Positions 25,132 through 61,700 of a DNA stretch of 64,000 nucleotides are shown here, piece after piece. Source of the stretch: Magallana gigas (lineage: Eukaryota); contig NC_088854.1 in assembly GCF_963853765.1 (NCBI RefSeq), forward strand, positions 13,144,001 to 13,208,000, written 5' to 3'. The notes beneath the pieces are model-generated. The model worked only from the letters and a program-made list of their open reading frames with translations. It searched no databases and had not been told where the DNA came from. Every line of letters begins with the position of its first letter. Positions within the stretch are counted from its first letter, which is position 1. The position numbers were made by a program, and so were the translations under genes.

Positions 25132-26987
25132 ATATTTTTCAATTTTGTATTTGTTATATAGATAAAATAACAGCCCTGATAGACTAGGCAGTATATCTTT
25201 TTTCAGACAGCAAAATAAATATTGTTTTGTATACAAAATTATAAAGTTTACAACTTTATTGTCTTTTGACAATGGGAGTTCACCAAATAAAATATTGATA
25301 ACATTGAAATCAATTCGTATAGAAGTATATTGGTAAATATGCATGCTTAGGTTGCTCCAAATTGTTGATATTTTTTCACAGCTTACAAAAACATGTTGGA
25401 TTGTCTCAACATCCCGTTCACAGAAGGAACAGCAATCAGAAGATACAACATTGATTTTTTTCAAATAGTAATTTACAGGAAGAATTCTATGAAGTAATCT
25501 GTATTGTAACCATTGAAAAGATGAGTCATGGTTGTCTTAAAACATACATTAAAAGCATCATAAACACAAATTTCTACCCCATATTGTACCAACTCTGAAT
25601 TCCACTTAAGCATTGCAGTTGGGGTTATTTTACAGGCAATTAGTTGTTTGTAGATGGGTTTTGTACATTTGTCTTGCAAAAGAAAAGGTTTGTAATATAA
25701 TGGAATATATGGAGTAAAGGATCTCTTAAATAAACATTTGATATATACTGGTAGAGAGGATTTTAGATATGTTGATATAGCACTAACTATACTGTTGTAT
25801 TGCATTGTACAAATATGCTAATCAATTTTTTTTATAAAACATACATGTGACAAAAAATTTCCAATATCATCTAGAAGGTCATTGATGACCTTTACACCTT
25901 TTTTGTACCAACTTTTTATAAACAATGTTTTCATACCAACTCTAATATGACTATTATACCAAATAGGCATAAATAAAAAGTTTTCTTCAATATAATTATC
26001 ATCAAAAGATTTTATAACATAGAGCATTGATTTAAATACATCTTTCCAAAAATTATTATTTTTGGGAATAACACATTCAGTAATAAATGCATCACCAAAA
26101 TCAAGTAACAAGTTGACAAAGTCTTCACCATTAATGGCCTTCAATATGGAAGTCCATGACCTATGTCCAACAATTAATCTTTTAATCCATGAACATTTTA
26201 ATGACAGAATAAACTTGTTAATATACAACTTTTTTAAACCGCCTCTTTGATATACTTGAATAACCACTGCACGTTTTATTTTATCACATTTGGCATTCCA
26301 AAAAAAATTCAAAAATATCTTTGTTCAATGTGGTGATTACCTCTTTAGGAGTAGGTAAATACATAAATAAATGATTGATTTTTGGAAAAACTAGATATTT
26401 CACTACCGTCACACGTCCAATTGGTGTAAGGTTTCTTCTTTTCCATTGTTGAAGCATGCTTTTAATTTTTGGAACTTGTATAGAATAGTTTAACTCAGTA
26501 ACTTTTTCAAGATCGTCAGAAAAGTTAATACCCAGTAAACTAAACGTTGTTGAGCCCCAATCTAGTTTCCATCTCGTGTGGTGAAAGACCTGATTTGAGA
26601 ATTTTTTTTAGCCAATCCATATAATATTTGTTTTTGAACTATTTATTTTCAACCCAGAAATGTTTGAATAAAAGTCTAGAGTATCTAAAGATGCAAATAG
26701 TGAAGTAGGTTAACCATCCAAAATAAGAGCTGTGTCATCTGCATATTGACTTATTTAATGTTCTTTACTGTTTATTGTAATACCCTTTATTTTATTGTTT
26801 TATTTAATAAGAATTGAAAGTATTTCAGCACAAAGGAGGAATAAATAGGGTGCAAAAGGGTCTCCCTGTCTACAACCTCTTTCAATAGAGAAGTAATTAG
26901 ATAAAAAGCCACTTTGCAACACTGAAGCCTTAAAATTTATGTTTAATATTTTAACCCACTGGATTATATAATTACCAAAACCATAAC
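25132..26987 (-). mobile_element. Decayed L1/Tx1-clade LINE fragment (RT C-terminal half plus zf-RVT) flanked by a 14-bp direct repeat
   Basis: Minus-strand motifs ERGCRQGDPFAPYLFLLCAEIL (about 26820-26885), SQYADDT (about 26730-26750), FFWNAK..IKR..GGL..SLKCSWIKRL and CSFCERDVETIQHVFVSC, with stops and frameshifts. agcatcacggaatt occurs at 25118-25131 and 26988-27001. Confidence 0.9.
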
Positions 26988-30258: not shown

Positions 30259-31776
30259 CTACGGACCGTGTCGAAACGATCTTGCATCGGTTTCGTTACC
30301 GACTTTGGAGAAGGTTTTCTTTTTCCATGTACAGCAATGAATTACCAGGCAAATCATTGAGGTAATGAAAACGCCCCCACCTGCAGCAGCAACCATCATG
30401 TAAATCGTATTTATGGAGAATATACCTTCCACCGTCTTTGATGTCATTTTCAAATTGTTTCCTGTAGATAGTACTGGAGCGATCTTTTTCGCTGGCGTCT
30501 GCTTAACGATGGTAGTTTTTTCGGTGGTTGTAGTCGGAGTGGTGGTCTTGGTTGTAGGAGGAATGGTTTTCCTGGTGGTATTATTGTTTGTTGTGGTTGA
30601 GATAGTACTCATGGTAGTGGTACTGGTTGTGGTGATGGTAGTTGTAGTTGGAACATCAGTCACAATCAATTGCATGTTGACCTTATTCTGCTTTTTTACA
30701 TTGTTAGCCTGAATCGTCCACTGGCCGTTGTCATCAACGTCCAATGACTTTATGGTAAGGACACCTGTCTCAGATACTTCGTAATTTGGATAATCATAGT
30801 TATAATGCCTCAACTCCGTCTTGTCAGGCTTTGTCCATATGACGTCAGGGAAAGGGTCTCCTCCGAATGTACATGAAATATTGAGGCTGGAGTGATACTT
30901 GCCGGTACTTGAAGTTGAAGTGCAACTTACAGATGCCGGTACACAGGTTAGCTGGGAGGATGGGACATTTACAATGGACATGTATTGGAGAGATTCTGGT
31001 GTACTACACGTGACAGATTCCGGTATAGGACTAGGAAGCACTTTTACCCACTCCAAGGCACAGGTGCATTTCCAATCATTGTCATTTAAGTGGATACTAT
31101 TTATGTGAGGTAATGTCATTATTGATGAATTGGAAAGTTCCGTAAAAATGTTTCCGGAAATGTCGATATAAGCCAGATTTGTAGGGGTCTTGGTGAAGCT
31201 CCAGTCCAACTGCTTTAGTTTGTTTCCATGAAGGTCTAAGACCTTCAATATTGGAAGACGGTTTAATAAGCGTTTGTCCAGTTTCTTTAAGCCCATCTCT
31301 GCCAGATATAATTCTGTCAATCTTCCTAAATCGTTGAAAGCAGACAATTGTAATTCAGTGCCATTATTTCCAGACAAATTCAAAACGTTGAGTCTTGTTA
31401 ACCCCTTTAACGTGTTTTGTGCTATTTCGCCAATTTTGTTGAAAGAAAGTTCCAGTGTGATCAACGTTGGTGGCAAAGAGCAGCTTGTTATGGATTCTAC
31501 ATTGCTGAAAGCCATATAAAGTCTCTCCAGTTTCTGGAAGGAATTTAGATGGCTGCTCTCAATCGATGGAATCTGGTTTCGAGAGGAAAAGGTGCCACTG
31601 AGTTGTAATGAAGTGAAATGACTTGGGAAGGCTGACGGAAAGCTGGTTAATCCTGGTCTGCAAATACCAAACACATTGGAGCATTGGCACGATGTTGGAC
31701 AAGAAGATTCAACATTCCCAAAACTCACAACATTAAGTACACATGAAATCGCTGTTATTTTTCTTTTATTTTCCAT
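30259..31776 (-). CDS. LIG2: LRR-Ig-mucin-TM receptor (505 aa) with frameshifted cytoplasmic tail
   Basis: ATG at 31776 (MENKRK...); same domain order as LIG1. An extra base at 30315-30318 relative to LIG3/4 shifts the tail. Confidence 0.88.
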   Translation of the reverse strand: MENKRKITAISCVLNVVSFGNVESSCPTSCQCSNVFGICRPGLTSFPSAFPSHFTSLQLSGTFSSRNQIPSIESSHLNSFQKLERLYMAFSNVESITSCSLPPTLITLELSFNKIGEIAQNTLKGLTRLNVLNLSGNNGTELQLSAFNDLGRLTELYLAEMGLKKLDKRLLNRLPILKVLDLHGNKLKQLDWSFTKTPTNLAYIDISGNIFTELSNSSIMTLPHINSIHLNDNDWKCTCALEWVKVLPSPIPESVTCSTPESLQYMSIVNVPSSQLTCVPASVSCTSTSSTGKYHSSLNISCTFGGDPFPDVIWTKPDKTELRHYNYDYPNYEVSETGVLTIKSLDVDDNGQWTIQANNVKKQNKVNMQLIVTDVPTTTTITTTSTTTMSTISTTTNNNTTRKTIPPTTKTTTPTTTTEKTTIVKQTPAKKIAPVLSTGNNLKMTSKTVEGIFSINTIYMMVAAAGGGVFITSMICLVIHCCTWKKKTFSKVGNETDARSFRHGP

Positions 31777-32429
31777 CTTTGTTAAGAAAAAATTCGAAGG
31801 CTCATTAATTCCCAAATTATGTCAACTGTTTTAACCGGTGCCTTTCACTGAGTGTTGCGGCTTCAGTGTGACGGCATGTCCTGTTAAGGGTTGATATGGG
31901 GAGTGATAATACGGTTCGAGGATTTATTCAAAACATTTGATCACCTGACCAGGACATGTTTAAAAAACAAAAAGCTCATAAATTCATGTAATATGCACAA
32001 GATCACCACAGGTAACGAGACATTTTAGATATTTAACATTTCTATCAATTAAAGGGCATTGATTTAAACACATTTTACTTGCATATGTCAAATGGATTGG
32101 ACACAATTTTCAATATCCTAGTCCTCTACTGGTGATGCATTTAGAAATATAATCAAGTATATAATAAATGATAAATGATATAGTAATATTGTTGTGATAT
32201 ATACATGTAGTATTCAAATTCATATATGTACATTGAATGTTTATTTATGTCTTTTTTTTTTCAAATACAAATAAATAACAAAATAAACACATCCAAATAG
32301 ATATATTTGATGGTTGTTTTATTCTTCCTCATTCTTTTAAAAAATTTACGGCGCTTGTTAACTAAAATTTTGATCAATTTATTGAAATATACACTTATTA
32401 CATGCGTTAATAAGAATAAAACAACCAGT

Positions 32430-37256: not shown

Positions 37257-39732
37257 AATGTTTGCGCCATGTTTCGTTAACAAATAAATTACTCAAAGAT
37301 TCTTTTATATTTTAAACATAATGAATAGCGACTAATCTAGAAATAATTGACACAATCAATAATTATATATTTAATGTGAAACTAAAAGCAATTCAATTTC
37401 ACGCTAGCTTAACATACAATGTAAAACCCGTTGGAAAAATATTCCATTTAGTATTCTAAACAAAATATAATTTTGAATTGCAATTATGCCTATAAATCAG
37501 TAGCATTTTTCTAAACCCATCCACCCCCATCTCATCATCGTAAACATGTTTCAAGAGATAAAAACTCGATATTGTCCCTTTATTGTTGGTTGGTGGATTT
37601 CAAATAAGACAACAGTGCCTGTGGCCAAAGCCCACCATAAAACTGTATATTTTCCAATAATAAGAGATAAACTTATATTCTCGGCTAATTTTTACTGTGC
37701 TATTGATGGTTTATCTCGCGACAACCCCCTCTTCTTAATATTGTGATTTCACACAATAATCAATCTGATTTAGGGAGATTTTATTCCATAATATGACATT
37801 ATCAACATAAATCGATGTAAATCAAACAAACATAAATCGTAATAAATAACAAATCAATATGATACAAACAAACTACAGAAGGATATGTTTGATAAAAGCA
37901 TTAAATAATATATTCAAAAACATTGCGATATGATAAATACTGTTTTAACAAAACAAAGCAACAAGAAATACATGCAGTCTTTGATAGTCGTTAATGACAC
38001 GTTCGTGAATCAAATACCTAGAAAATTGAGAAGTCAAATTGATGTCTGTGTTTGAATCACGAAAAAAATAGCCATAAATTACAAGGTAGTTTTTTTCCCA
38101 TGAGATTCCGTTCTCTTATACTCTACAAAATTTCCCGCTATTCGTAAAATTCATAACTCCCAATAGTATGCACTCTTCGTGTTCGTCTCGGAGTGAGGTT
38201 CCGGACCGTATCGAAAAGGTCTTGCTTCGGTTTCTTTTCCGACATTGGAGGAGGTTTCTTCTTCCGTGTACAGCAATGAATGACCAGACAAATCATGGAG
38301 GTAATAAACGCGCTCCCACCGGCAGCCGCCACCATCATGTAAATCGTATTCATGGAGAACATCCCTTCCGCCGGCTTAGGCATCTTCTGGTTTCCTGCAG
38401 GTGGAACTGGAGTGGTATTTTTAATTGTCGTCTGCTTAACAGTGGTTGTGGTGGTGGGTTTGGTGGTAGATGTTGTAGTAGGTTTTTCAGTGGTAGTGGT
38501 AGGAGTGGTGGTAGTCGTGGTGGTAGGAGGGGTGGTAGTCGTGATGGGGGTACTGGTTGTTGTTGTCGGGGTGGTGGTTGTGGTCGTCGTAGTGGTAGGG
38601 GTAGTGGTAGTAGTGGTGGTGGTAGTCGTTGTAGTGGTGGTTGGAATATCGGTCACGGTCACTTGCATGTTGACCACATTATGTTTCTTCACGTTGTTGG
38701 CCTGAACCGTCCACTGACCGTCGTCATCAACGTCCAATGACTTTATGGTAAGGACACCTGTCTCAGATACTTCGTAATTTGGATAATCATAGTTATAATA
38801 CCTCAACTCCGTCTTGTCAGGCTTTGTCCATATGACGTCAGGGAAAGGGTCTCCTCCGAATGTACATGAAATATTGAGGCTGGAGTGATACTTGCCGGTA
38901 CTTGAAGTTGAAGTGCAACTTACAGATGCCGGTACACAGGTTAGCTGGGAGGATGGGACATTTACAATGGACATGTATTGGAGATATTCTGGTGTACTAC
39001 ACGTCACAGATTCCGGTATAGGACTAGGAAGCACTTTTACCCACTCCAAGGCACAGGTGCATTTCCAATTATTGTCATTTAAGTGGACACTCTTTATGTG
39101 TGGTAATGTCATTATTGATGAATTGGAAAGTTCTGTAAGAATGTTTCCGGAAATGTCGATATAAGCCAGATTTGTAAGTGTCTTAGTGAAGCTCCAGTCC
39201 AACTGCTTTAGTTTGTTTCCATGAAGGTCTAAGACCTTCAATATTGGAAGATTGTCTAATAAGCGCTTGTCCAGTTTCTTTAAGCCCATCTCTGCAAGGT
39301 ATAATTCTGTCAATTTGCTTAAATCGTTGAAAGCAGACAATTGTAATTCAGTGTCATTATTTCCAGACAAATTCAAAACTTTGAGTCTTGTTAACCCCTT
39401 TAACGTGTTTTGTGCTATTTCGCCAATTTTGTTGAAAGAAAGATCCAGCGTGATCAACGTTGGTGGCAATGAAGCGCTTGCTATGGATTCCACATTACTG
39501 AAAGCCATATAAAGTCTCTCCAGTTTCTGGAAGGAATTAAGATTTTTACTTTCAATCGACGGAATCTGGTTTCGAGAGGAAAAGGTACCACTCAGTTGTA
39601 ATGCAGTGAAATGACTTGGGAATCCGGACGGAAAGCTGGTTAATCCTGGTCTGCAAATAGCAGAGACATTGGAACATTGGCACTGTGTTGGACAAGAAGT
39701 TTCAACATTCCCAAAACTCACAACAATAAGTA

Positions 39733-41765
39733 GGCAATCGGTTTTTAGAACGCAGTTCGCAGTTCGCAGTTCGCAATTGAATAGTGAACTGCGTTCTATA
39801 GAACGCAGTTCGCAATTCAAAATTTAGAATTCATATTTGGGGCCCGCTTGCCTTATATGCAATTGAATAGTGAACTGCGTTCTATAGAACGCAGTTCGCA
39901 ATTCAAAATTTAGAATTCATACTTGGGGCCCGCTTGCCTTATATGCAATTGAATAGTGAACTGCGTTCTATAGAACGCAGTTCGCAATTCAAAATTTAGA
40001 ATTCATACTTGGGGCCCGCTTGCCTTATATGCAATTGAATAGTGAACTGCGTTCTATAGAACGCAGTTCGCAATTCAAAATTTAGAATTCATATTTGGGG
40101 CCCGCTTGCCTTATTTGCAATTGAATAGTGCACTGCGTTCTATAGAACGCAGTTCGCAATTCAAAATTTAGAATTCATACTTGGGGCCCGCTTGCCTTAT
40201 ATGCAATTGAATAGTGAACTGCGTTCTATAGAACGCAGTTCGCAATTCAAAATTTAGAATTCATACTTGGGGCCCGCTTGCCTTATTTGCAATTGAATAG
40301 TGAACTGCGTTCTATAGAACGCAGTTCGCAATTCAAAATTTAGAATTCATACTTGGGGCCCGCTTGCCTTATTTGCAATTGAATAGTGAACTGCGTTCTA
40401 TAGAACGCAGTTCGCAATTCAAAATTTAGAATTCATACTTGGGGCCCGCTTTCCTTATATGCAATTGAATAGTGAACTGCGTTCTATAGAACGCAGTTCG
40501 CAATTCAAAATTTAGAATTCATACTCGGGGCCCGCTTTCCTTATATGCAATTGAATAGTGAACTGCGTTCTATAGAACGCAGTTCGCAATTCAAAATTTA
40601 GAATTCATACTTGGGGCCCGCTTGCCTTATATGCAATTGAATAGTGAACTGCGTTCTATAGAACGCAGTTCGCAATTCAAAATTTAGAATTCATATTTGG
40701 GGCCCGCTTGCCTTATATGCAATTGAATAGTGAACTGCGTTCTATCTAGAACGCAGTTCGCAATTCAAATTGTTGAATAGTGAACTGCGTTCTATCTAGA
40801 ACGCAGTTCGCAATTCAAAATTTAGAATTCATACTTGGGGCCCGCTTGCCTTATATGCAATTGAATAGTGAACTGCGTTCTATAGAACGCAGTTCGCAAT
40901 TCAAAATTTAGAATTCATATTTGAGGCCCGCTTGCCTTATTTGCAATTGAATAGTGAACTGCGTTCTATAGAACGCAGTTCGCAATTCAAAATTTAGAAT
41001 TCATACTTGGGGCCCGCTTGCCTTATATGCAATTGAATAGTGAACTGCGTTCTATAGAACGCAGTTCGCAATTCAAAATTTAGAATTCATACTTGGGGCC
41101 CGCTTGCCTTATATGCAATTGAATAGTGAACTGCGTTCTATAGAACGCAGTTCGCAATTCAAAATTTAGAATTCATATTTGGGGCCCGCTTGCCTTATTT
41201 GCAATTGAATGGTGAACTGCGTTCTATAGAACGCAGTTCGCAATTCAAAATTTAGAATTCATACTTGGGGCCCGCTTGCCTTATATGCAATTGAATAGTG
41301 AACTGCGTTCTATAGAACGCAGTTCGCAATTCAAAATTTAGAATTCATACTTGGGGCCCGCTTGCCTTATTTGCAATTGAATAGTGAACTGCGTTCTATA
41401 GAACGCAGTTCGCAATTCAAAATTTAGAATTCATATTTGGGGCCCGCTTGCCTTATTTGCAATTGAATAGTGAACTGCGTTCTATAGAACGCAGTTTGCA
41501 ATTCAAAATTTAGAATTCATACTTGGGGCCCGCTTGCCTTATATGCAATTGAATAGTGAACTGCGTTCTATAGAACGCAGTTCGCAATTCAAAATTTAGA
41601 ATTCATACTTGGGGCCCGCTTGCCTTATATGCAATTGAATAGTGAACTGCGTTCTATAGAACGCAGTTCGCAATTCAAAATTTAGAATTCATACTTGGGG
41701 CCCGCTTGCCTTATATGCAATTGAATAGTTCTAGAACGCAGTTCGCAATTCATTTTTGGGGCCCG
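39733..41765 (+). repeat. Left arm: tandem array of an 86-bp unit (about 23 copies)
   Basis: ggcccg recurs at 39841, 39927 and onward (period 86). The unit contains the 26-bp palindrome gaactgcgttctatagaacgcagttc plus EcoRI, ApaI and MfeI sites. Confidence 0.97.
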
Positions 41766-41929
41766 AAATTTTCAGGGGCATCTACTAGTGGTATTTCACT
41801 ACCACTGTGAAATTTGGTGATGCAGTAATCTATAGTTTTTGAGATCTGTATGGTGTCCGGATAGGGCCATTTGCATTAGCGCGACATCGCGTTCAGATAA
41901 ACGAGACATTGCGCTAACACATGTACACA

Positions 41930-42051
41930 ACACACCGTCGCGCTAACGCAACTTTGCACAACACGCCGTCGCGCTAACACAACTTTGCACAACACGCCGT
42001 CGCGCTAACACAACTTTGCTTAACACGCCGTCGCGCTAACGCAACTTTGCA
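41930..42051 (+). repeat. 31-bp minisatellite (4 copies) in the central loop of the foldback element
   Basis: cgctaac recurs at 41941, 41972, 42003 and 42034. Confidence 0.9.
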
Positions 42052-42229
42052 AGTTTCACAGTCTAGTAGGAAGTCGTGTCCGGAAATATTAGACTGCGCA
42101 TGCTGAAATATGCATGCACGCAAGCATGGATAAAAAATAAATAAAATGTACTTTGAAATATATATATTATTTTCATTTATTATCAGTGCATATGAATAAA
42201 GATATAGTTACTAGTGTGTCACTAGATAA

Positions 42230-42412
42230 GGATATGAATTTCGTGGATCATTGTTTAGTTGATCCACGAAATTAAATATTCATTGAAGTGCAATTTTAAT
42301 TAACATTTTGTATTGATAGGTTCATTGGCCACTAATTTACGTATACTTGATATTGTGATTTTCACTTTATCCACGAAAATTGATGCCCTTGAATATCAAT
42401 GAAACTACAGTA
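42230..42412. mobile_element. Small MITE-like relic with internal hairpin
   Basis: Perfect 14-bp arms aatttcgtggatca / tgatccacgaaatt (42237-42273). The end aatgaaactacagta resembles a recalled common mollusc MITE terminus. Confidence 0.4.
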
Positions 42413-42744
42413 TTCAATTGCATATAAGCTCGATTCTCAGAAACTATAGATAACTGCATCACCATATTTTCACTGTGGTAGTGAAATACCACTAGTAGAT
42501 GCCCCTGAAAAATTCAGGTCCCGAATATGAATTCTAAATTTTGATTTGCAAATTGCTTTCTAAATAGAACGCAGTTCACTATTCAATTGCATATAAGTCC
42601 GATTCTTAAACATAGGTAATAACAGATTACAAAGCTCACCGAGACGAGGGATCACCTTTTTGAGGAATCACCTTTATGAGACCACCTTTATCATATTATT
42701 TGAAAATCATAGTTAATGATCTTGGATATACATGGATACTGTTT

Positions 42745-43700
42745 TGACAAAATATCGTATAACAATATCATATAAATAAAAATTGTATAATAATCATATG
42801 TTCATTTCATAGGGTATTATATGATACAATGTTTATCAATACGATAATATAAAATACTATATTGCATCCTATGATACCAGTACAATATATATCATATATT
42901 ACAATAAAATATATACTGTAATAAATAATGATGAAATATGATATTGTAACATATGATATGACATTGTATCTTGTTATACATTATTGTATTTGATCACATA
43001 ATACACTATCATAATATATTATGATATTGATATGATATGATACATTATAATAATATATGATACAATATCATATCACATAATGCATCACAATATTATACTG
43101 TATAATATTATAGCATGATATTGCATTGTATGATATTGTATCATATTTAATACAATGTAGGATATTGTATCATATGATACAACAAAATTAGCTACAACAT
43201 TGTATCATATCAATTGATACAATATCATGTGATATAGTACTATATTATATCATACAATATCATAGTATACTTTATTGTATGATATGATACAATATCACAT
43301 TATACAATATCATATAATACATTTTCATATATTGATATAATTATATATTATATAAACCAATCTCATTTTATACAATATCGTATCATATGATATGATATAT
43401 ATTATACAATATCATATCATATGATACTATATTATGATGCAATATCATATGAAATAGCATGTGATAAAATATAATATATGTCATATTATACAATATCATA
43501 TTATACAATATTGTATCATAATAAACAATACTATACATAACAATATCACAATACAATATCATATCTTATGTACAAAAAAAATTGATACAATATCATATCG
43601 TATCATATAACTTTTTACAATATAATATATGATATAATATTGTATCATATAAAACAATAGTGTATCATATCATACAATACTATATCATAGGAATCATATT
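42745..43700. repeat. AT-rich degenerate (atatc/gatat-type) low-complexity tract
   Basis: About 950 bp of imperfect tacaatatcatatcatatgat-like motifs inside the HINE-like element. Confidence 0.85.
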
Positions 43701-43859
43701 ATATCATTTAACAACGAACACATCTATCAAGCAGGTTTTAGATAGGATAATTTTTTTTAGCAACTTTGATAATGGAGATCTGCATCTGAAGCTACCTCTG
43801 CAGTTCATTAATATTATAGTTAAATCAACTTTGCAAGCTATTATCTATAAAATTTGTGA

Positions 43860-44915
43860 CCTGTTCCAAAAAAACAAATCTCATCCAGCATCCGAAACAT
43901 ACGCCTCAGATTCAGCATTCAAGCCTGCCAGGTGCATCAGTATCATAAGACGTATCATCCATGCAAGTTTTATGAAGTTGGGACCAGTAATAACTAAGAT
44001 ATAATCATCAGAGGGCACCTGCTCCAAAAACTTTAACAAACTCTTAAAACCTTAACCTCCTTCAGCATCCGAAACCTATGGCTCAGATTCAGCATTCATG
44101 CCTGTCAGGTGCATCAGTATTATAAGACGCACCATCCATATAAGTTTGGTGAAGTTAAGACCAGTGATAACTAAGTTATAATCATCAAAGGGCACCTGCT
44201 CCAAAACTTTAACCAGCTCTAAAAACCTTAACCTCATCCAGCATCCGAAACTTATGGCTCAGATTCGGCATTCCTTCCTGTCAGAGGCATCAGTATCATA
44301 CGACACACCATCTATGCAAGTTTGGTGAAGTTAGGACCAGTAATAACTAAGATATAATCATCAAAGGGCACCTGCTCCAAAAACTTTAACCAGCTCTTAA
44401 AACCTTAACCTCATCCATCATCTGAAACCTATGGCCCAGATTCAGCATTCAAGCCTGCCAGGTATATCAGTATCATAAGACGCACCATCTATGCAAATTT
44501 AGTGAAGTTAGGACCAGTAATACCTAAGATATAATCATCAAAGGGCACCTGCTCCAAAAACGTTAACCAGCTCTAAAAACCTTAACCTCATCCAGCATCT
44601 GAAACCTAAGGCTCAGATTCAGCATTAAAGCATGTCTGATGCATCAGTATCATAAGATGCACCATCCATGCAAGTTTGGTAAAGTTAGGACCAGTAGTAA
44701 CCTATAAATTGCTATCAAAGGGCACCTGCACCAAAAACTCTAACTTGCTCCAAAAACCTTAACCTCCTCCAGCATCTGAAACTCATGGCCCTGATTCAGC
44801 ATTCAGGTCTTTCAAGTCCATGAGTAGGTCAAGATGCATCATCCATGCAAGTTTGGTGAAGATAGGACAAGTAATAACTTAGATACAGGACCTGCAACAA
44901 AAACTTTAACCAGGT
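43860..44915 (+). repeat. 177-bp tandem repeat (about 6 copies)
   Basis: agcatc(c/t)gaaac anchors at 43887, 44064, 44240, 44417, 44594 and 44771. Confidence 0.93.
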
Positions 44916-44983
44916 TCGGACGCCGACGCCGAGGGTATAGCATAAGCTCCCCCCGACTTCGTTTCGGTGAGCTAAAAACTACC

Positions 44984-47157
44984 CAAATATGAATTCTAAA
45001 TTTGAATTGCAAACTGCGTTCTAGATAGAACGCAGTTCACTATTCAATTGCATATAAGGCAAGCGGGCCTCAAATATGAATTCTAAATTTTGAATTGCGA
45101 ACTGCGTTCTAGATAGAACGCAGTTCACTATTCAATTGCATATAAGGAAAGCGGGCCTCAAATATGAATTCTAAATTTTGAATTGCGAACTGCGTTCTAG
45201 ATAGAACGCAGTTCACTATTTAATCGCACTAAATTTTGAATTGCGAACTGCGTTCTATAGAACGCAGTTCACTATTCAATTGCATATAAGGAAAGCGGGC
45301 CTCAAATATGAATTCTAAATTTTGAATTGCGAACTGCGTTCTAGATAGAACGCAGTTCACTATTTAATCGCACTAAATTTTGAATTGCGAAGGGCGTTCT
45401 ATAGAACGCAGTTCACTATTCAATTGCATATAAGGCAAGCGGGCCCCAAGTATGAATTCTAAATTTTGAATTGCGAACTGCGTTCTATAGAACGCAGTTC
45501 ACTATTCAATTGCATATAAGGCAAGCGGGCCCCAAGTATGAATTCTAAATTTTGAATTGCGATCTGCGTTCTATAGAACGCAGTTCACTATTCAATTGCA
45601 TAGAAGGCAAGCGGGCCCCAAATATGAATTCTAAATTTTGAATTGCGAACTGCGTTCTATAGAACGCAGTTCACTATTCAATTGCATATAAGGCAAGCGG
45701 GCCCCAAATATGAATTCTAAATTTTGAATTGCGAACTGCGTTCTATAGAACGCAGTTCACTATTCAATTGCATATAAGGAAAGCGGGCCCCAAGTATGAA
45801 TTCTAAATTTTGAATTGCGAACTGCGTTCTATAGAACGCAGTTCACTATTCAATTGCATATAAGGCAAGCGGGCCCCAAGTATGAATTCTAAATTTTGAA
45901 TTGCGATCTGCGTTCTATAGAACGCAGTTCACTATTCAATTGCATAGAAGGCAAGTGGGCCCCAAATATGAATTCTAAATTTTGAATTGCGAACTGCGTT
46001 CTATAGAACGCAGTTCACTATTCAATTGCATATAAGGCAAGCGGGCCCCAAATATGAATTCTAAATTTTGAATTGCGAACTGCGTTCTATAGAACGCAGT
46101 TCACTATTCAATTGCATATAAGGAAAGCGGGCCCCAAGTATGAATTCTAAATTTTGAATTGCGAACTGCGTTCTATAGAACGCAGTTCACTATTCAATTG
46201 CATATAAGGCAAGCGGGCCCCAAATATGAATTCTAAATTTTGAATTGCGAACTGCGTTCTATAGAACGCAGTTCACTATTCAATTGCATATAAGGCAAGC
46301 GGGCCCCAAGTATGAATTCTAAATTTTGAATTGCGAACTGCGTTCTATAGAACGCAGTTCACTATTCAATTGCATATAAGGCAAGCGGGCCCCAAGTATG
46401 AATTCTAAATTTTGAATTGCGAACTGCGTTCTATAGAACGCAGTTCACTATTCAATTGCATATAAGGCAAGCGGGCCCCAAATATGAATTCTAAATTTTG
46501 AATTGCGAACTGCGTTCTATAGAACGCAGTTCACTATTCAATTGCATATAAGGCAAGCGGGCCCCAAATATGAATTCTAAATTTTGAATTGCGAACTGCG
46601 TTCTATAGAACGCAGTTCACTATTCAATTGCATATAAGGCAAGCGGGCCCCAAATATGAATTCTAAATTTTGAATTGCGAACTGCGTTCTATAGAACGCA
46701 GTTCACTATTCAATTGCATATAAGGCAAGCGGGCCCCAAATATGAATTCTAAATTTTGAATTGCGAACTGCGTTCTATAGAACGCAGTTCACTATTCAAT
46801 TGCATATAAGGCAAGCGGGCCCCAAATATGAATTCTAAATTTTGAATTGCGAACTGCGTTCTATAGAACGCAGTTCACTATTCAATTGCATATAAGGCAA
46901 GCGGGCCCCAAATATGAATTCTAAATTTTGAATTGCGAACTGCGTTCTATAGAACGCAGTTCACTATTCAATTGCATATAAGGCAAGCGGGCCCCAAATA
47001 TGAATTCTAAATTTTGAATTGCGAACTGCGTTCTATAGAACGCAGTTCACTATTCAATCGCACTAAATTTTGAATTGCGAACTGCGTTCTATAGAACGCA
47101 GTTCACTATTCAATTGCGAACTGCGAACTGCGAACTGCGTTCTAAAAACCGATTGCC
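44984..47157 (-). repeat. Right arm: inverted tandem array of the 86-bp unit (about 25 copies)
   Basis: Reverse complement of the left-arm unit, with some deletion-variant units at about 45215, 45355 and 47045. Confidence 0.97.
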
Positions 47158-49384
47158 CAATAAGTACACATGAAATCGCTGTTATTTTTCTTTTATTTAC
47201 CATCTTTGTAAAAACAAAATTTGGAAGGCTCCTTAATTTTAAATTATGGCAACTGTTTTAACCGGTGCCTTTCACTTAGTGTTGCGGCTTCAGTGTCACA
47301 GCATGTCCTGCTAAGGGTTGATATGGGGAGTGATATTACGTTTCGAGGATTTATTCAAAACATTTGATCACCTGACCAGGACATGTTTAAAAAACAAACA
47401 ATTATTAGTGTACCCAATCGCCATTTATTTATGCAATCAATCGACTGCTTCCGTGTTTGGTTAAAATCTACTAAAAATCTACTAAATTTGAGTTTACAAG
47501 TGTAAGGGGAAATGTACCCTCTTATCTTTTTATTACTTTATATTCTTACTATGCAATCTCATTTGCAGCTGCAAGTTCTAAATAACAAGATGTTGTTTTA
47601 GCTGACGTTTAAAGGCAAATCGAGAACGTACGTACACGCAATAAGTTTAAACTTATTTTTTGTTTTTAAATGATGTTCTCCTTGCATTCTGAGTTTGGTT
47701 TGACTGCACTTTTCAAGCTCAAATTTTAGGAAATTTTCCTATGATTTCATTTGAAATAAAATTTTCGGTTATAAGTATGACGAAAATTTAATTGTGTTTT
47801 ATTAAGTATGATGCAACTTGAATTATACCCTTGTGTTTTCATTTCTGGAAAATATTGTCATTTGACGCGTTCGGTTCTGAAATTCTGAATTTGCTATGGA
47901 CGTGAATTCTCAGTTTTACGTGCATATGTTAACATAGACATGATAATAAATTTATTCAAGTAAATTACAGAATGTAAGATATGAGACCATGTTAAAATAA
48001 ACGAGTCCTTACACATGTTGATGGATAGCATTGGAATTGTGTTTTAATGTTTTATACAGAGTTGTATGTTCATACAGGGCATGTTGAAAAGAAAAATATG
48101 AATCCCCCCTTTCGTAAATAACTTATAATTAGCATATTTAGGGATTTGCTAGAGTAAAACACGATATCAGTTAGTGAAATCAATCTTTCTAGAAGAGGTC
48201 TTTTAAAGAAATAGATTCCAGAGTCATTTCTTTACATAGGAAAGAAAATATGTGGTCAACAGACATACAAATCAATGGAGCATGGTATTTAGTAACTATC
48301 TATTTAAAGAAACATAGAATATAAATAAGTCTAGCTGTGTCTGAGTCACGAACTGGATATGAATTTATCAAACTTTATTTTACTTTATCTTTGTGTTTAC
48401 AACTTGCAATGCTTAGCAAGGTATTACTACTATATTGTAATATTATTAACATTAATTAGAATGTTGTTCGTTGAGTTGCCAAACTAATAATTCTTTATTA
48501 TGGTATAAATGCTCGCGCCATGTCTTGTTAACAAATAAATTACTCAAAGATTCTTTTATATTTGAATAGCGACAAACACAAAACTAATGGGCACAATTAA
48601 TTATTATATATTTATGTGAAACTAAAAGCAATTCAATTTCACGCTAGGTTACATGTAGCTTAGCATACAACGTAAAATCCGTTGGAAATATATTCCATTT
48701 AGTATTTGAAACAAAATATAATTTGAAATTGCAATTATGCCCATAAATCAGTAGCATTTTTCTAAACCCATCCACCCCAATCTCATCATCGTTAACATGT
48801 TTCAAGAGATAAAACTCGAGATTGTCCCTTTATTGTTGGTTGGTGGATTTCAAATAAGACAACAGTGTCTGTGGCCAAAGCCAACATAAAACTGTATATT
48901 TTCCAATAATAAGAGATAAACTTATATTCTCGGCTAATTTTACTGTGCTATGGATGGTTTATCTCGCGACAACCCCCTCTTCTTAATATTGTAATTTCAC
49001 ACAATTATCAATCTGATTTAGGGAGATTTTATTCCATAATATGACATTATCAACATAAATCGATGTAAATCAAACAAACATAAATCGTAATAAATAACAA
49101 ATCAATATGATACAAACAAACTACAGAAGGATATTTTTGATAAAAGCATTAAATAATATATTCAAAAACATTGCGATAGGATTAATACTGTTTAAATAAA
49201 ACAAAGCAACAAGAAATACATGCAGTCTTTGATAGTCGTTAATGACACGTTCGTGAATCAAATACCTAGAAAATTATAAAGTCAAATTGATGTCTGTGTT
49301 TGAATCACGAAAAAAATAGCCATTAATTACAAGGTAGTTTTTTCCCATGAGATTCCGTTCTCTTATTCTCTACAAAATTGCCTG

Positions 49385-51025
49385 CTATTCGTAATGTTCA
49401 TAACTCCCAATATTATGCACTCTTCGTGTCCGTCTCGGAGTGAGGTTCCGGACCGTATCGAAAAGGTCTTGCTTCGGTTTCTTTTCCGACATTGGAGGAG
49501 GTTTCTTCTTCCGTGTACAGCAATGAATGACCAGACAAATCATGGAGGTAATAAACGCGCTCCCACCGGCAGCCGCCACCATCATGTAAATCGTATTCAT
49601 GGAGAACATTCCTTCCGCCGGCTTAGGCGTCGTCTGGTTTCCTGCAGGTGGAACTGGAGTGGTATTTTTAGCTGTCGTCTGCTTAACAGTGGTTGTGGTG
49701 GTGGGTTTGGCGGTAGATGTTGTAGTAGGTTTTTCAGTGGTAGTGGTAGGAGTAGTGGTAGGAGGGGTGGTGGTTGTGGTGGTAGGAGGGGTGGTAGTCG
49801 TGGTGGGGGTACTGGTTGTTGTCGGGGTGGTGGTTGTGGTCGTCGTAGTGGTAGGGGTAGTGGTAGTAGTGGTGGTGGTAGTCGTTGTAGTGGTGGTTGG
49901 AATATCGGTCACGGTCACTTGCATGTTGACCACATTCTGTTTCTTCACGTTGTTGGCCTGAACCGTCCACTGGCCGTCGTCATCAACGTCCAATGACTTT
50001 ATGGTAAGAACACCTGTCTCAGATACTTCGTAATTTGGATTATCATAGTTATAGTACTTCAACTCCGTCCCATCAGGCTTTGTCCAAATGACTTCCGGAA
50101 ATGGGTCTCCTCCAAATGTACACGAAATTTTGAGGCTGGTGTGATATTTGCCGGTACTTGAAGTTGAAGAACAACTTACAGATGCCGGTACACAGGTTAG
50201 CTGGGAGGAAGGGACATTTACAATGGACATGTATTGGAGGGTTTCTGGTGTACTACACGTGACAGATTCCGGTACTGGACTAGGAAGCACTTTTACCCAC
50301 TCCAAGGCACAGGTGCATTTCCAATCGTTGTCATTTAAGTGGATACTCTTTATGTGTGGTAATGGCATTATTGATGAATTGGAAAGTTCCGTAAAAATGT
50401 TTCCGGAAATGTCGATATAAGCCAGATTTGTAAGTGTCTTGGTGAAGCTCCAGTCTAATTGCTTGAGTTTGTTTCCATGAAGGTCTAACACCTTCAACAT
50501 TGGAAGATGGTCTAATAAGCGCTTGTCCAGTTTCTTTAAGCCCATCTCTGCAAGATATAATTCTGTTAATTTGCTTAAATCGTTGAAAGCAGACAATTGT
50601 AATTCAGTGCCATTATTTCCAGACAAATTCAAAACTTTGAGTCTTGTTAACCCCTTTAACGTGTTTTGTGCTATTTCGCCAATTTTGTTGAAAGAAAGAT
50701 CCAGCGTGATCAACGTTGGTGGCAAAGAAGCGCTTGCTATGGATTCTACATTGCTGAAAGCCATGTAAAGTCTCTCCAGTTTCTGGAAGGAATTTAGATG
50801 GCTGCTCTCAATCGACGGAATCTGGTTTCGAGAGGAAAAGGTACCACTCAGTTGTAATGCAGTGAAATGACTTGGCAATCCAGACGGAAAGCTGGTTAAT
50901 CCTGGTCTGCAAATAGCAGAGACATTGGAACATTGGCACTGTGTTGGACAAGAAGTTTCAACCTTCCCAAAACTCACAACAATAAGTACACATGAAATCA
51001 CTATGGCACATTTACTTTCCAGCAT
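49385..51025 (-). CDS. LIG4: intact LRR-Ig-mucin-TM receptor (546 aa)
   Basis: ATG at 51025 (MLESKCAIVIS...), full domain set, tail ending IGSYEHYE. Near-identical to LIG3 in TM, tail and 3' flank. Confidence 0.92.
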   Translation of the reverse strand: MLESKCAIVISCVLIVVSFGKVETSCPTQCQCSNVSAICRPGLTSFPSGLPSHFTALQLSGTFSSRNQIPSIESSHLNSFQKLERLYMAFSNVESIASASLPPTLITLDLSFNKIGEIAQNTLKGLTRLKVLNLSGNNGTELQLSAFNDLSKLTELYLAEMGLKKLDKRLLDHLPMLKVLDLHGNKLKQLDWSFTKTLTNLAYIDISGNIFTELSNSSIMPLPHIKSIHLNDNDWKCTCALEWVKVLPSPVPESVTCSTPETLQYMSIVNVPSSQLTCVPASVSCSSTSSTGKYHTSLKISCTFGGDPFPEVIWTKPDGTELKYYNYDNPNYEVSETGVLTIKSLDVDDDGQWTVQANNVKKQNVVNMQVTVTDIPTTTTTTTTTTTTTTPTTTTTTTTTPTTTSTPTTTTTPPTTTTTTPPTTTPTTTTEKPTTTSTAKPTTTTTVKQTTAKNTTPVPPAGNQTTPKPAEGMFSMNTIYMMVAAAGGSAFITSMICLVIHCCTRKKKPPPMSEKKPKQDLFDTVRNLTPRRTRRVHNIGSYEHYE

Positions 51026-57182: not shown

Positions 57183-58787
57183 TCAGAATTCGGATAGTGT
57201 TTCAATAATGGTGAAAGCGTTTGTGTTTCGTTCCGCTTTTCGGAAGTCGTAACTTGGTTTTCTCCCCACTCTGTTCTTCTTGACTGGCCCCGAGTAAGGC
57301 TGCCCCGGCGGTTTTTTACAAAACGCAAAGTACATGATAGCAATACAGATCGAGGTAATAAGCAGCGAACTGCCTCCGACTATGGTCAAAATAACGCCGA
57401 TCTTTTCCAGATCGTCTTTAGGTTTGGACGGTGTTTTAGACGCGTTGTTGGTAGTCGTACTTTTTGTTGGAGTTGTGGTTGTGGTGGTTTTTATTGTTTT
57501 TGTTGTGGTCGGTTGTGGTGTCGTGGTCGTAGTGGTGGTGGTCGTAGGAGTTGTTGTAGGAGTTGTCGTAGTGGTCGTGGAAGCGGTCGTAGTGGTGGTA
57601 GTCGGAGTGGTAGTGGTTGTCGTGCTAGTGGTCGTTGTGGTTGTGGTGGTAGTGGTGATGATTCTTACCTCGATATGAACCACCACTTTGATATCATTTC
57701 CGTGTGTGTTCGTGACCGTCAGAGTCCAGTCGCCGGAATCACTCTCGACAGACGATGGAATCAACAGACTTCCGTCCGTGAGCACGATGTGGGAGGAATT
57801 CGTCGAGTTCTTTACTAAAAGTTCTTCACCGCTCGGTTTGTTCCATATAGGATAGGGCCGTGGATCTCCGCCGTTGAATCGACAGTTTACGCGTATTGGT
57901 TCCGTTTCATTCACGATGATCGAAGTCCTTTCGCATGTTGCGTTGTACGGTGGGATACACAGCATTTCGCTGTCTGGGATGAGCATAAGGTTTCTATTTT
58001 CCAGCTTTTTCGGCGAATCACAAATAACAACCCCTTTAATGTTTGTCCATTTCTTTAATGCATTCATTTCACAATTACAATGCCACGCATTTCCGTCTGT
58101 GTACAGGCTTTTCAGAGTGACCATTTGCTGATACGTAAAGGAGGGAAGAGCTATCAACCGGTTTCCCACCAAATCAAGGCTCATCAACGATGCAAAATTC
58201 TCGAAAACTTCGGGTTCGAATTCGACCAGTTCGTTTCCATGTAAATCTAAATGTACAATCTTCCTTGTATTGTAAAATAAATATGGCTGAAGATTACTTA
58301 ACTTCATTTGCCCAAGAAATAGTTCGAATAGATTTGGAACATGTTGAAAGGCATTTTCCTCAATCACGCAATTCTCATTGCTTGTTAGTTCGAGTTTCGT
58401 CAATTTCGTCAATCCTCGGAATGTAGCCTCTTTTACTGAGCTAAGCTGGTTGTCAGACAGATCAAGTGTTCGTAAATTAGAGAGGCTTTCAAAAGCACCG
58501 TCCTCGATTGATTCGATTCCAGAATTGGCTAGATACAGGCGCTGTAATATCGGAAAATTTGCAAAGTCACTCTTCCTTATCCTTGTGAAAGAATTTTTCT
58601 GTGCAGATGTTCCGGAGAAATAAAGGTTTTTCACGGTAGAGGGAATTCCCGAGGGTATGGCTGACAGCCCACCGAAACATTGTACAAGCGAGTCCCCAAA
58701 CAAACACCGACAGTCAGACGGGCAGCCAGCAGAAATCTCAAATAACACAACACAGCCACAAAAAATGGCAACAATTCCCCGCTCCAT
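57183..58787 (-). CDS. LIG5: divergent LRR-Ig-mucin-TM receptor (534 aa)
   Basis: ATG at 58787 (MERGIVAIF...). CPSDCRC LRRNT, the same number of LRRs and the same atypical repeats as LIG1-4, WHCNC LRRCT, Ig, Thr stalk and TM. Confidence 0.92.
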   Translation of the reverse strand: MERGIVAIFCGCVVLFEISAGCPSDCRCLFGDSLVQCFGGLSAIPSGIPSTVKNLYFSGTSAQKNSFTRIRKSDFANFPILQRLYLANSGIESIEDGAFESLSNLRTLDLSDNQLSSVKEATFRGLTKLTKLELTSNENCVIEENAFQHVPNLFELFLGQMKLSNLQPYLFYNTRKIVHLDLHGNELVEFEPEVFENFASLMSLDLVGNRLIALPSFTYQQMVTLKSLYTDGNAWHCNCEMNALKKWTNIKGVVICDSPKKLENRNLMLIPDSEMLCIPPYNATCERTSIIVNETEPIRVNCRFNGGDPRPYPIWNKPSGEELLVKNSTNSSHIVLTDGSLLIPSSVESDSGDWTLTVTNTHGNDIKVVVHIEVRIITTTTTTTTTTSTTTTTTPTTTTTTASTTTTTTPTTTPTTTTTTTTTPQPTTTKTIKTTTTTTPTKSTTTNNASKTPSKPKDDLEKIGVILTIVGGSSLLITSICIAIMYFAFCKKPPGQPYSGPVKKNRVGRKPSYDFRKAERNTNAFTIIETLSEF

Positions 58788-61700
58788 TACAAAAAACAAA
58801 GTGTGAATTAAACACGAATTCAACCAGTTTGTAGTTTTTTCCCACTGATCAAAATATGTTAAATTGACATCTTTTATTTTATTTCGCCGATTTGTAATCT
58901 TAGACTGATGTAAATTTGGGATTTCGCCTAATCCCTCCCATTTTGAAAACGAGTTGACCAACGGGTTTAAACCTAAGAAAAGTTCCGGCGTCTTATCGCA
59001 TTGTTGAGAAATAAATTTACGATATATGACTTCAGTTTTTACTTACAGTGGGCGGTACTTCTGCCTAAGGTGATTTCCCATTTCTGTGTCAAAAACGTAG
59101 CATTCATTTTCGAAAGAATTTTACCATTTTTTTGCCCAAAAAATCGGAAAAAAGAAAATTGTTTGTATTTATGGAGAAACAGAAAAATCTAACCTTTATC
59201 AACCAATAAAGTTTTAAGGAGAATCCTTTGAACAAGAATACCTTTATTGGGCAAATTAAAGATGATTGGATTTAAATTTTTTGATGTAGCGTGTGTTGTT
59301 CAGGTAATAAGCGTCTGATTTAATGGTTGTGCAATAGTTCCGTATTTCGGCGGGTGGCTTTGATGGAACCGTTTACCAGTAAGTATACAATGGGTGAAGA
59401 TAAAAACTTATCGCACTTATTATTCTTGTTCACCGTAAGAGCGGAATGTCAATCAAAAAGTTAATCCATCATAGCGCGCATTTCAATTTATCGGATTAAG
59501 CATAAACAGACATTGATAACTTGGTGTAAGATAGATGTTTAATAAATAAACAAACAATAATTTCGTGGATAAGGGCTCGCCCTGTGGAAAAATGCAAAAA
59601 TGTCCTCGCTTTGCAAGGTTTCACTTTCTGACATCGAATCTTCAAATGTTGAGACTTTCAAGAGTGATCTACAATGAATTATACTATTTGACGTCAGTAA
59701 GGCATAATTATTTCATATGCGTTCAAAATATGACGTATCTTTTCGCCAGTTTCTGTGCGTTTTCCATCAAAAATATTTGCTGAGTTGTCGCGCAAAGTAG
59801 CAAATGATGCCACCTAGTTATTCGTAGTTTACCCTGAGGTTTTCTTTAACGCGATTAAGCTTTTTAGAACACGGTGGTTGGCAAATTTATTTGTAAAAAT
59901 AAATCTGGGTGGATTTCATAAAGAGATAACCAACGCACATCGGATGTGTTCTAAAACCCTCTCATAAACTACTTTTTCATTGAAACTGTCACACAAAACT
60001 CAACGACTTTCTGATTATCAACCAGGGGAGAGTTATTATCCTTAATATGAAAGAATTTAGGTCAGTTAATATTGAAATATTGTAAGTGACACACTAAAGA
60101 AGAACTACTCATACGAACCATCAGGCCCTGATGCTGTTTGACTGCAAAATTCATGTAATCCTGAACTCAATTATAATGATATTATAACAAACTGAGGATT
60201 TATTTGGATTTTAAGGTATTTACGTTTTGGCTCAGATTTAATGGAATCAGCGAACAATGACCCCCTCCCCGCAGATGAAAGATTCACAAAAAAAAAATGC
60301 TGATACCATAAAACTACGTAAATACTTCACTGTATGAAGTTTATGTTTATTCAAGGATTATATAACAGATAATTATATCGGTATGAATAAAACAATATGT
60401 TCGACTCTGATTTTTTCCACAAAATTATGGCAACTTAAATTTTGTGTGGATTAATCAATATGTAGATGACCAATAGAGGTAACTGAAAATATGTAAGCAG
60501 AATCTCTTGCAAATGAAATTACATATGTCTCAAGATATTTTTATCTCCATATTTAACAGTCAATATTTCAGTAGATAATATAAGACTGTCGCAGAGAAAG
60601 AAAAAGGTATAAAGATTAATATTTTGAATCAATCTATTTGATACTGGTTTTTATTTTATAAATATAAAATGTGTTTAAAGCACCCAAAAGCCAACAAAAC
60701 TGATTTCTTGTAACAATGCTTGAAAAACTGTATATCTGTGAATAATGTGAATAGATAGACCGCAATAAGTCCACGCATACACTCAACAAAGACCCTTTCC
60801 TGTTAATGTACAGTGTATTTCTCCAGGTACATGACAAATTTGATGCAGAAATATCTAGACACATTTCATTAAATTGTTATTAAATAACCTTCAAATCAAA
60901 GCGGGGTTTTTTGTTTTGTTTTTTGTTTTTTTTGTTTGGTTTTTTTTTTTTTGGCTAAATTTATTCCTGGTTTTTTTTTATCATTATTATTAAAAATGTA
61001 TTCTTAAAGAAAACCATTGTACAAAACCTCCTGAAGTTGGACATTTAAGAAAAATTCTGAAACAAGGTTAAGAATAACCCGGAAACCTTTTTTTAGAGAT
61101 GTAATGACGGTGTTCCCTTAGATATTAATAAAGACATATTTTTATTTATTCAAATGAGAGGAAGTGGCCCTCCATTCACTCACCCTCCCCCTAAATCCGT
61201 TAGTGGCCTATTTGTTTTTATTTTGGCGTTACGTTATGTTGGCGATACCGATATTTTGCCATAGGTGAAATTGGCTATATGTTGTTGAAAAGTCAGCACA
61301 TTATTTAAATTATTACTAGATAATATCTCGCGCAAGCGTGGGAATTTAACACTTAATTTATTTATTTTTTATTTCAAACCAGTGAGATGGTAATTAATGT
61401 GTTGCACCTCTAAATTTTGTTTTTATGGTCAAATTGTATTATAATATTTATTCATGTTCCAAACATATACTAGTATAAGATTTTTAGATGAAAGACTTAT
61501 GCAATGGGGCCTCATTCCACTTCCCCGTTTCATGTATGTATACATTAATAAATTATTTAAATCAATGCATAACTTATTCTTATTGACGCAGGACTATTAC
61601 AAAATAAGGTTTACTAACAATCTAAATCTGTCGTGGTGTAAAAATGTATAAATTTTAAAAAAAACCCTAGTGTATGCATATTTATTTCCACATTTTAAAC

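Follow-up and report, generated by a model that had tools for sequence, protein, structure and literature searches.

Does the foldback transposon that lies within the signal-peptide codons of LIG3, the third gene of a tandem array in the Pacific oyster Magallana (Crassostrea) gigas, destroy that gene, and do all oysters carry it? The locus belongs to a stretch of 64,000 nucleotides (positions 13,144,001 to 13,208,000 of NC_088854.1; the window) within a chromosome-scale contig of 61,469,542 bp, here C2. The minus strand of the window carries five single-exon genes in tandem that encode proteins with leucine-rich repeats and an immunoglobulin domain (LRR-Ig genes). "LIG3" is an ad hoc label which follows the numbering of these genes in the window and which is otherwise the usual name of DNA ligase III. 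The explanation that we favour, with a probability of roughly 0.8, is that a recent foldback insertion split LIG3 in the reference haplotype, that the resulting allele is most probably null, and that other oysters carry an empty allele.

As shown in Table 1, the element is bounded on each side by a perfect copy of CAATAAGTA, the 9-bp target-site duplication. The inversion of its tips is perfect over 95 nt, and its arms of about 2 kb, with 97-99% complementarity along a length greater than 900 nt, enclose a non-coding and partly AT-rich core of about 3.6 kb. No ATG-started open frame of at least 90 aa was found in this copy, in which one frame of 114 aa begins at GTG. On the minus strand, the duplication reads G(TA CTT ATT G), where the brackets enclose the duplicated bases, and covers codons 13-16, corresponding to V-L-I-V of the putative signal peptide. 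When the flanks are joined on paper they read MVNKRKITAISCVLIVVSFGNVETSCPTQCQCS, in agreement with SCVLIVVSFG of the paralogues and, as expected, LIG1, LIG2 and LIG4 in the same window have an uninterrupted signal peptide. The start of LIG3 is shifted by 7,434 bp, that is, by the element plus one copy of the duplication, and the frame that opens at ATG 47203 runs for exactly 46 codons before a stop inside the element. The body of the gene comprises 531 codons without stop or frameshift; read over 38138-39730 (-), it gives 530 residues and the terminal stop, with no internal stop.

These measurements bear out the first-pass annotation of this DNA, which had reported a duplication in the V-L-I-V codons, an ATG displaced by 7.4 kb, an otherwise stop-free body, a read-through stop after about 46 codons, and perfect duplication and termini. 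It had also called the event recent, and the perfect duplication and tips, the intact frame of the body and a core 99.4% identical over 3,645 bp to that of another copy (C2:12299746-12309601) agree with that view. A 9-bp footprint would, as it had pointed out, stay in frame, since both copies of the duplication left in place would add three residues, L-I-V.

The empty site was found in other oysters. Sequencing runs that contain this DNA bear oyster labels. Contigs of four runs (X1, X3, X4 and X15) were placed on positions 38650-39800 with a likeness of at least 97%, and those of X15 and X4, which come from different studies, passed through the insertion site. In X15, an RNA run, a contig of 830 nt matched 39046-39732 and continued for 143 nt beyond the empty site, the first 30 nt of this continuation (those shown) being equal to 47167-47196. 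X4 was taken as DNA, given that its contigs total approximately the genome size and that the element terminus is hugely over-represented in it; here a contig of 150 nt matched 39609-39732 with zero mismatches and then followed for 26 nt the same sequence from 47167 on. Both contigs carried a single copy of CAATAAGTA at the uninterrupted site, and neither had any mismatch to LIG3 over the matched stretches, compared to 11-31 differing sites for LIG2 and 3-13 for LIG4. Their 5' continuation was of the LIG3/LIG2 type, unlike that of LIG4. These contigs belong to LIG3, and a word in which the LIG3-specific base of the duplication is joined to CACATG has an uninterrupted LIG3 as its only possible source. 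The contig of X3 continued for 11 nt at 39732, which is compatible with an empty site and fits LIG3 and LIG4 equally. A loose end of X3 at 39729 led to a contig of chromosome 8 that has 17 nt in common with the site, and was discarded as a chance partial match.

We also considered whether the junction in X15 could come from splicing of the filled allele. A cut that yields this junction could fall at any of 10 offsets inside the duplication, and the segment removed would then open, in order, with TA, AC, CT, TT, TA, AT, TT, TG, GG and GG. GT is not among these pairs and the AT offset lacks an AC end, so that neither GT...AG nor AT...AC ends can be formed. With no canonical splice ends and with the same junction in the DNA contig of X4, an empty allele is the only reasonable reading. 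The insertion is therefore not fixed, and other oysters have, and transcribe, an uninterrupted LIG3 allele. The earlier proposal of a segregating presence/absence allele thus gains support from LIG3-specific contigs of RNA and of DNA, whereas fixation in the species is contradicted by them, and a spliced LIG3 transcript that removes the element is ruled out for the junction seen.

The element belongs to a mobile family. A search of the 564-Mb assembly with the 28-nt terminus returned 204 occurrences (98 forward and 106 reverse), compared to 0 for the reversed control, and many of these termini pair facing inward at distances of 0.5-10 kb. Perfect 9-bp duplications of unrelated sequence flank seven of the ten paired copies examined, and in two more the duplications match at 7 of 9 positions. 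The count against the control and the seven unrelated perfect duplications exclude a chance origin of the termini. The core of the LIG3 copy was also compared with those of the other eight copies: five are about 95-99% identical in long blocks, and the remaining three are partial matches of 80-85%. The copy at C2:12299746-12309601 mentioned above (L036) measures 9,856 bp, is flanked by the duplication GTTTTGAAG, and lies 0.88 Mb from the LIG3 insertion on the same chromosome; it is possible that it was the donor of a local transposition into LIG3. A further copy, of 12.2 kb at C4:2748164-2760414 (L037, L038), hosts a nested non-LTR (long terminal repeat) retrotransposon, a long interspersed nuclear element (LINE), whose ORF (open reading frame) of 1,249 aa is open and contains endonuclease, reverse transcriptase and zf-RVT domains.

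The element was presumably moved by a transposase. No ORF of at least 90 aa was detected in 10 of the 11 family copies examined, and no transposase in any of them. The genome holds at least 61 matches to the transposase domain of Mutator-like elements (MULEs), many within long open frames, and no such domain was found inside the family copies listed, which account for 100 of the 204 termini. Duplication length, and only this feature, suggests a place for the family in the Mutator superfamily. The literature search returned nothing specific on an oyster foldback family or on the 86-bp satellite. With regard to expression, the element terminus at 39733-39800 reached a depth of 37-148 in run X15, which is metatranscriptomic, several-fold over the neighbouring gene, so either family ends are transcribed or the library contains DNA. 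Five single termini (L008-L012) at C2:4570212-4634565, spaced by about 11.6-23.7 kb, have the near-identical flank TCAACTGAAGGTTTATTGGT, from which L008 differs by one base, a pattern suggestive of a tandem segmental duplication with one end of the element inside it.

As to consequence, we propose that a non-autonomous foldback transposon with Mutator-like 9-bp duplications was recently inserted by cut-and-paste into the signal-peptide codons of LIG3 in the reference haplotype. The insertion puts 7.4 kb between the remaining 531 codons and an upstream part that holds the presumed promoter, a 5' untranslated region (UTR) with a minimum length of about 106 nt, the ATG and codons 1-15. Transcription from the native promoter would give RNAs that code for a peptide of 46 residues only and then enter the 2-kb inverted repeat, and the body has no in-frame ATG able to supply a signal peptide. 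As a type I membrane protein depends on its signal peptide to reach the surface, the inserted allele should be null, and we infer loss of function from the arrangement of its reading frames.

Several observations weigh against this interpretation. The filled allele was seen in the reference assembly only, and the contigs of X15, X4 and X3 run unbranched through the empty site; contigs can lose rare variants, so that unbranched contigs do not prove the absence of the filled allele. Searches of protein collections with the whole LIG3 body and with its LRR-Ig part recovered only models of the LIG1/LIG2 type, a fused model and more distant relatives, and led to no empty-site locus. No intact LIG3 protein is thus on record in the collections searched, and LIG4 was likewise absent from the matches. 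Neither an autonomous copy nor a cognate transposase was found among the 11 copies examined or by comparison of the MULE matches with the listed copies. No RNA that defines the products of the inserted allele was seen in the four runs, and the severed body is possibly transcribed to some degree, judging from X1.

This last point bears on the alternative that the inserted allele is not null, and that a membrane-targeted LIG3 is made all the same, either from a promoter or start located in the element or close to it or through unusual RNA processing. X1, which is probably RNA since it has no depth on the element terminus, yielded contigs that cover the body over 38650-39668 with 1 difference from the reference haplotype in about 990 positions, and the frame of the body stays open for 29 codons into the element. 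However, this extension contains no ATG, the listed "start" being a TTG under the bacterial code, and the body offers no in-frame ATG until about 76 codons from its beginning, past both the signal peptide and the LRRNT. The X1 contig ends 64 nt short of the junction, and none of the ten junction-restoring cuts has GT-AG or AT-AC ends. We consider a functional inserted allele improbable, and a null allele remains the better explanation.

It could also be argued that LIG3 was already dispensable or decaying when the element arrived, and that the event was neutral and did not knock out a working receptor. In favour of this, there are four close paralogues within 40 kb. Moreover, over 38650-39400 the reference (inserted) haplotype carries five derived changes, G126D, H160N, F198L, I215V and Q350H, at sites where the conserved residue is retained both in the contigs of the empty site and in the paralogues. 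These are accompanied by about five derived synonymous changes, and a ratio of approximately 5:5 of non-synonymous to synonymous among the private substitutions does not show relaxed constraint or decay of the reference LIG3. By contrast, LIG3 and LIG4, which are 94.7% identical in nucleotide sequence with a synonymous divergence (dS) of 0.11, gave a ratio of non-synonymous to synonymous divergence (dN/dS) of 0.25, and of 0.19 within the LRR-Ig part, and a protein of C. virginica shares with LIG3 the full architecture and the cytoplasmic tail. The low ratio and the conserved tail argue that LIG3 was constrained until recently. Together with 531 codons free of stops and frameshifts and with a transcribed uninterrupted allele, they make prior decay just as improbable as a functional inserted allele, and leave the split of a working gene as the preferred reading.

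An assembly artefact or a somatic event in the sequenced specimen is the least probable explanation of all, for although the insertion was seen in the reference only, inverted repeats are known to cause difficulties in assembly, and three small ORFs lying across or next to the junctions have no record in other assemblies, an artefact would not make a perfect 9-bp target duplication, the tips are identical to about 200 other termini in an architecture found in copies with duplications of their own, and the blank look-ups are uninformative because exact-protein searches with tiny ORFs rarely succeed.

With respect to known systems, foldback elements have been placed in the Mutator superfamily on structure and duplication length (PMC4079207). 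Like the foldbacks of Drosophila (FB, and Tetris of D. virilis; PMC4079207), the oyster element has long terminal inverted repeats (TIRs) of tandem sub-repeats and a variable non-coding middle, and the two families have in common target duplications of 8-10 bp, mostly non-autonomous copies and satellite-like arrays in the arms (PMC4079207). They differ in that the oyster unit of 86 bp is not that of Drosophila and the host belongs to another phylum, with no sequence relationship to test. The TIRs of sub-repeats, the constant duplication length at independent insertions and the empty site at the same locus are all those of a foldback-type element. The 9-bp target duplications and long TIRs are also those of non-autonomous MULEs, although no MULE transposase match of the genome falls within the listed oyster copies. 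The LIG3 allele resembles transposon-insertion nulls of natural populations in its exon insertion, its intact target duplication and the coexistence of an ancestral empty allele, with no difference in kind.

Table 1. Positions in the window of the LRR-Ig genes and of the parts of the insertion in LIG3.
Feature	Position	Strand	Remarks
LIG1 (first LRR-Ig gene)	21156-22616	-	
LIG2 (second LRR-Ig gene)	30259-31815	-	
LIG3 body (third LRR-Ig gene)	38138-39732	-	Start apart at 47203; stop codon 38138-38140
Left 9-bp target-site duplication, CAATAAGTA	39724-39732		Perfect copy
Non-autonomous foldback transposon	39733-47157		7,425 bp; inverted arms, 95-nt perfect tips
Left arm, two arrays of the 86-bp unit (11.6 + 11.1 copies) split by a variant unit	39773-41729		Tandem Repeats Finder, 97-98% matches
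Non-coding central core	41730-45372		AT-rich block at about 42800-43710; 177-bp repeats at 43880-44885
Right arm, 19.7 copies of the 86-bp unit in inverted orientation	45373-47062		Tandem Repeats Finder
Displaced LIG3 start, ATG 47203 and 15 native codons running into the element	47063-47203	-	46-codon ORF, then stop
Right 9-bp target-site duplication, CAATAAGTA	47158-47166		Perfect copy
Minimum 5' UTR of LIG3, displaced along with the ATG	47204-47309	-	Extent estimated from the length of the X15 contig
LIG4 (fourth LRR-Ig gene)	49385-51025	-	
Fifth LRR-Ig gene	57183-58961	-	

All five genes share one architecture, in which a putative signal peptide is followed by LRRNT, LRRs, LRRCT, a single Ig domain, a Thr-rich stalk, a putative transmembrane (TM) segment and a short tail. 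The LIG3 body contains the remainder of the putative signal peptide and then LRRNT, LRRs, LRRCT, the Ig domain, the Thr-rich stalk, the TM segment and the cytoplasmic tail. Its Pfam matches, LRR_8 (4.5e-20), Ig_3 (8.7e-09) and I-set (2.8e-08), are all above the curated cut-offs, and the scan gave LRR and Ig families only, without an ATP-dependent DNA ligase domain, so that an identity as DNA ligase III was rejected. A block of LRRs followed by an immunoglobulin domain is the arrangement that defines LRR-Ig (LIG) proteins, and it was found in LIG3 by Pfam; there are also matches to the solved structures of NGL, LINGO and LRIG. A hydrophobic stretch, ITAISCVLIVVSFG, upstream of the CPxxCxC motif of the LRRNT was read as a putative signal peptide, and a second one, IYMMVAAAGGSAFITSMICLVI, followed by basic residues, as a putative TM segment, in both cases from the sequence alone.

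In vertebrate LRRC4/NGL, LINGO-1, LRIG1 and LRRC24, as in LIG3, LRRNT-LRR-LRRCT precedes a single Ig domain, after which come a stalk, a TM segment, putative in LIG3, and a short tail. LIG3 matched LRRC4C (9.5e-21) and LINGO-1 (3.5e-19) over LRR and Ig, and LRIG1 (1.2e-30) mainly in the LRR part. The automatic annotation of the source names a paralogue "leucine-rich repeat-containing protein 24-like". In contrast to the vertebrate genes, those of the oyster are single-exon and tandemly amplified and encode a long Thr-rich, mucin-like stalk, and the likeness lies in sequence matches, from which orthology to any vertebrate member does not follow. A role of the LIG3 protein as a surface receptor or in adhesion may be inferred from these features.

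Some further observations concern the array and its annotation. The entry named "peroxidasin [Magallana gigas]" by its source (P0005, 496 aa) comprises in alignment the C-terminal part of LIG2 and part of LIG1, and a metaclust entry of 722 aa (P0001) is fused in a similar way; both seem to result from gene models merged across the tandem array. Between LIG1 and LIG2, at 24970-25464 and 25818-26312 (-), there are two ORFs 848 bp apart, each of which is exactly 164 aa long, and which are probably a repeated unit. The array adjoins a protocadherin-like single-exon gene of 917 aa with seven cadherin repeats, at 2957-5710 (-).

The insertion is a polymorphism of a well-known, ordinary kind, to be expected in a transposon-rich and polymorphic genome, and the new fact is the uninterrupted, transcribed allele. 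Presence/absence variation of immune-type genes has been reported in other bivalves. A broader view, which we regard as doubtful, is that the foldback family is active now in the germline of the Pacific oyster and that the LRR-Ig array is a variable repertoire of surface receptors, to which nulls made by transposons add individual differences; if this were true, the nearly identical copy 0.88 Mb away would be a candidate donor of a local hop. The locus offers a clean and datable case of a recently moved foldback transposon in an aquaculture species, with filled and empty alleles that are easy to genotype, and brings to light a foldback family of about 100 copies able to disrupt genes. Other oysters possess and transcribe an intact form of a gene whose allele in the reference genome is disrupted, which calls for caution in annotation and in studies of LRR-Ig genes.

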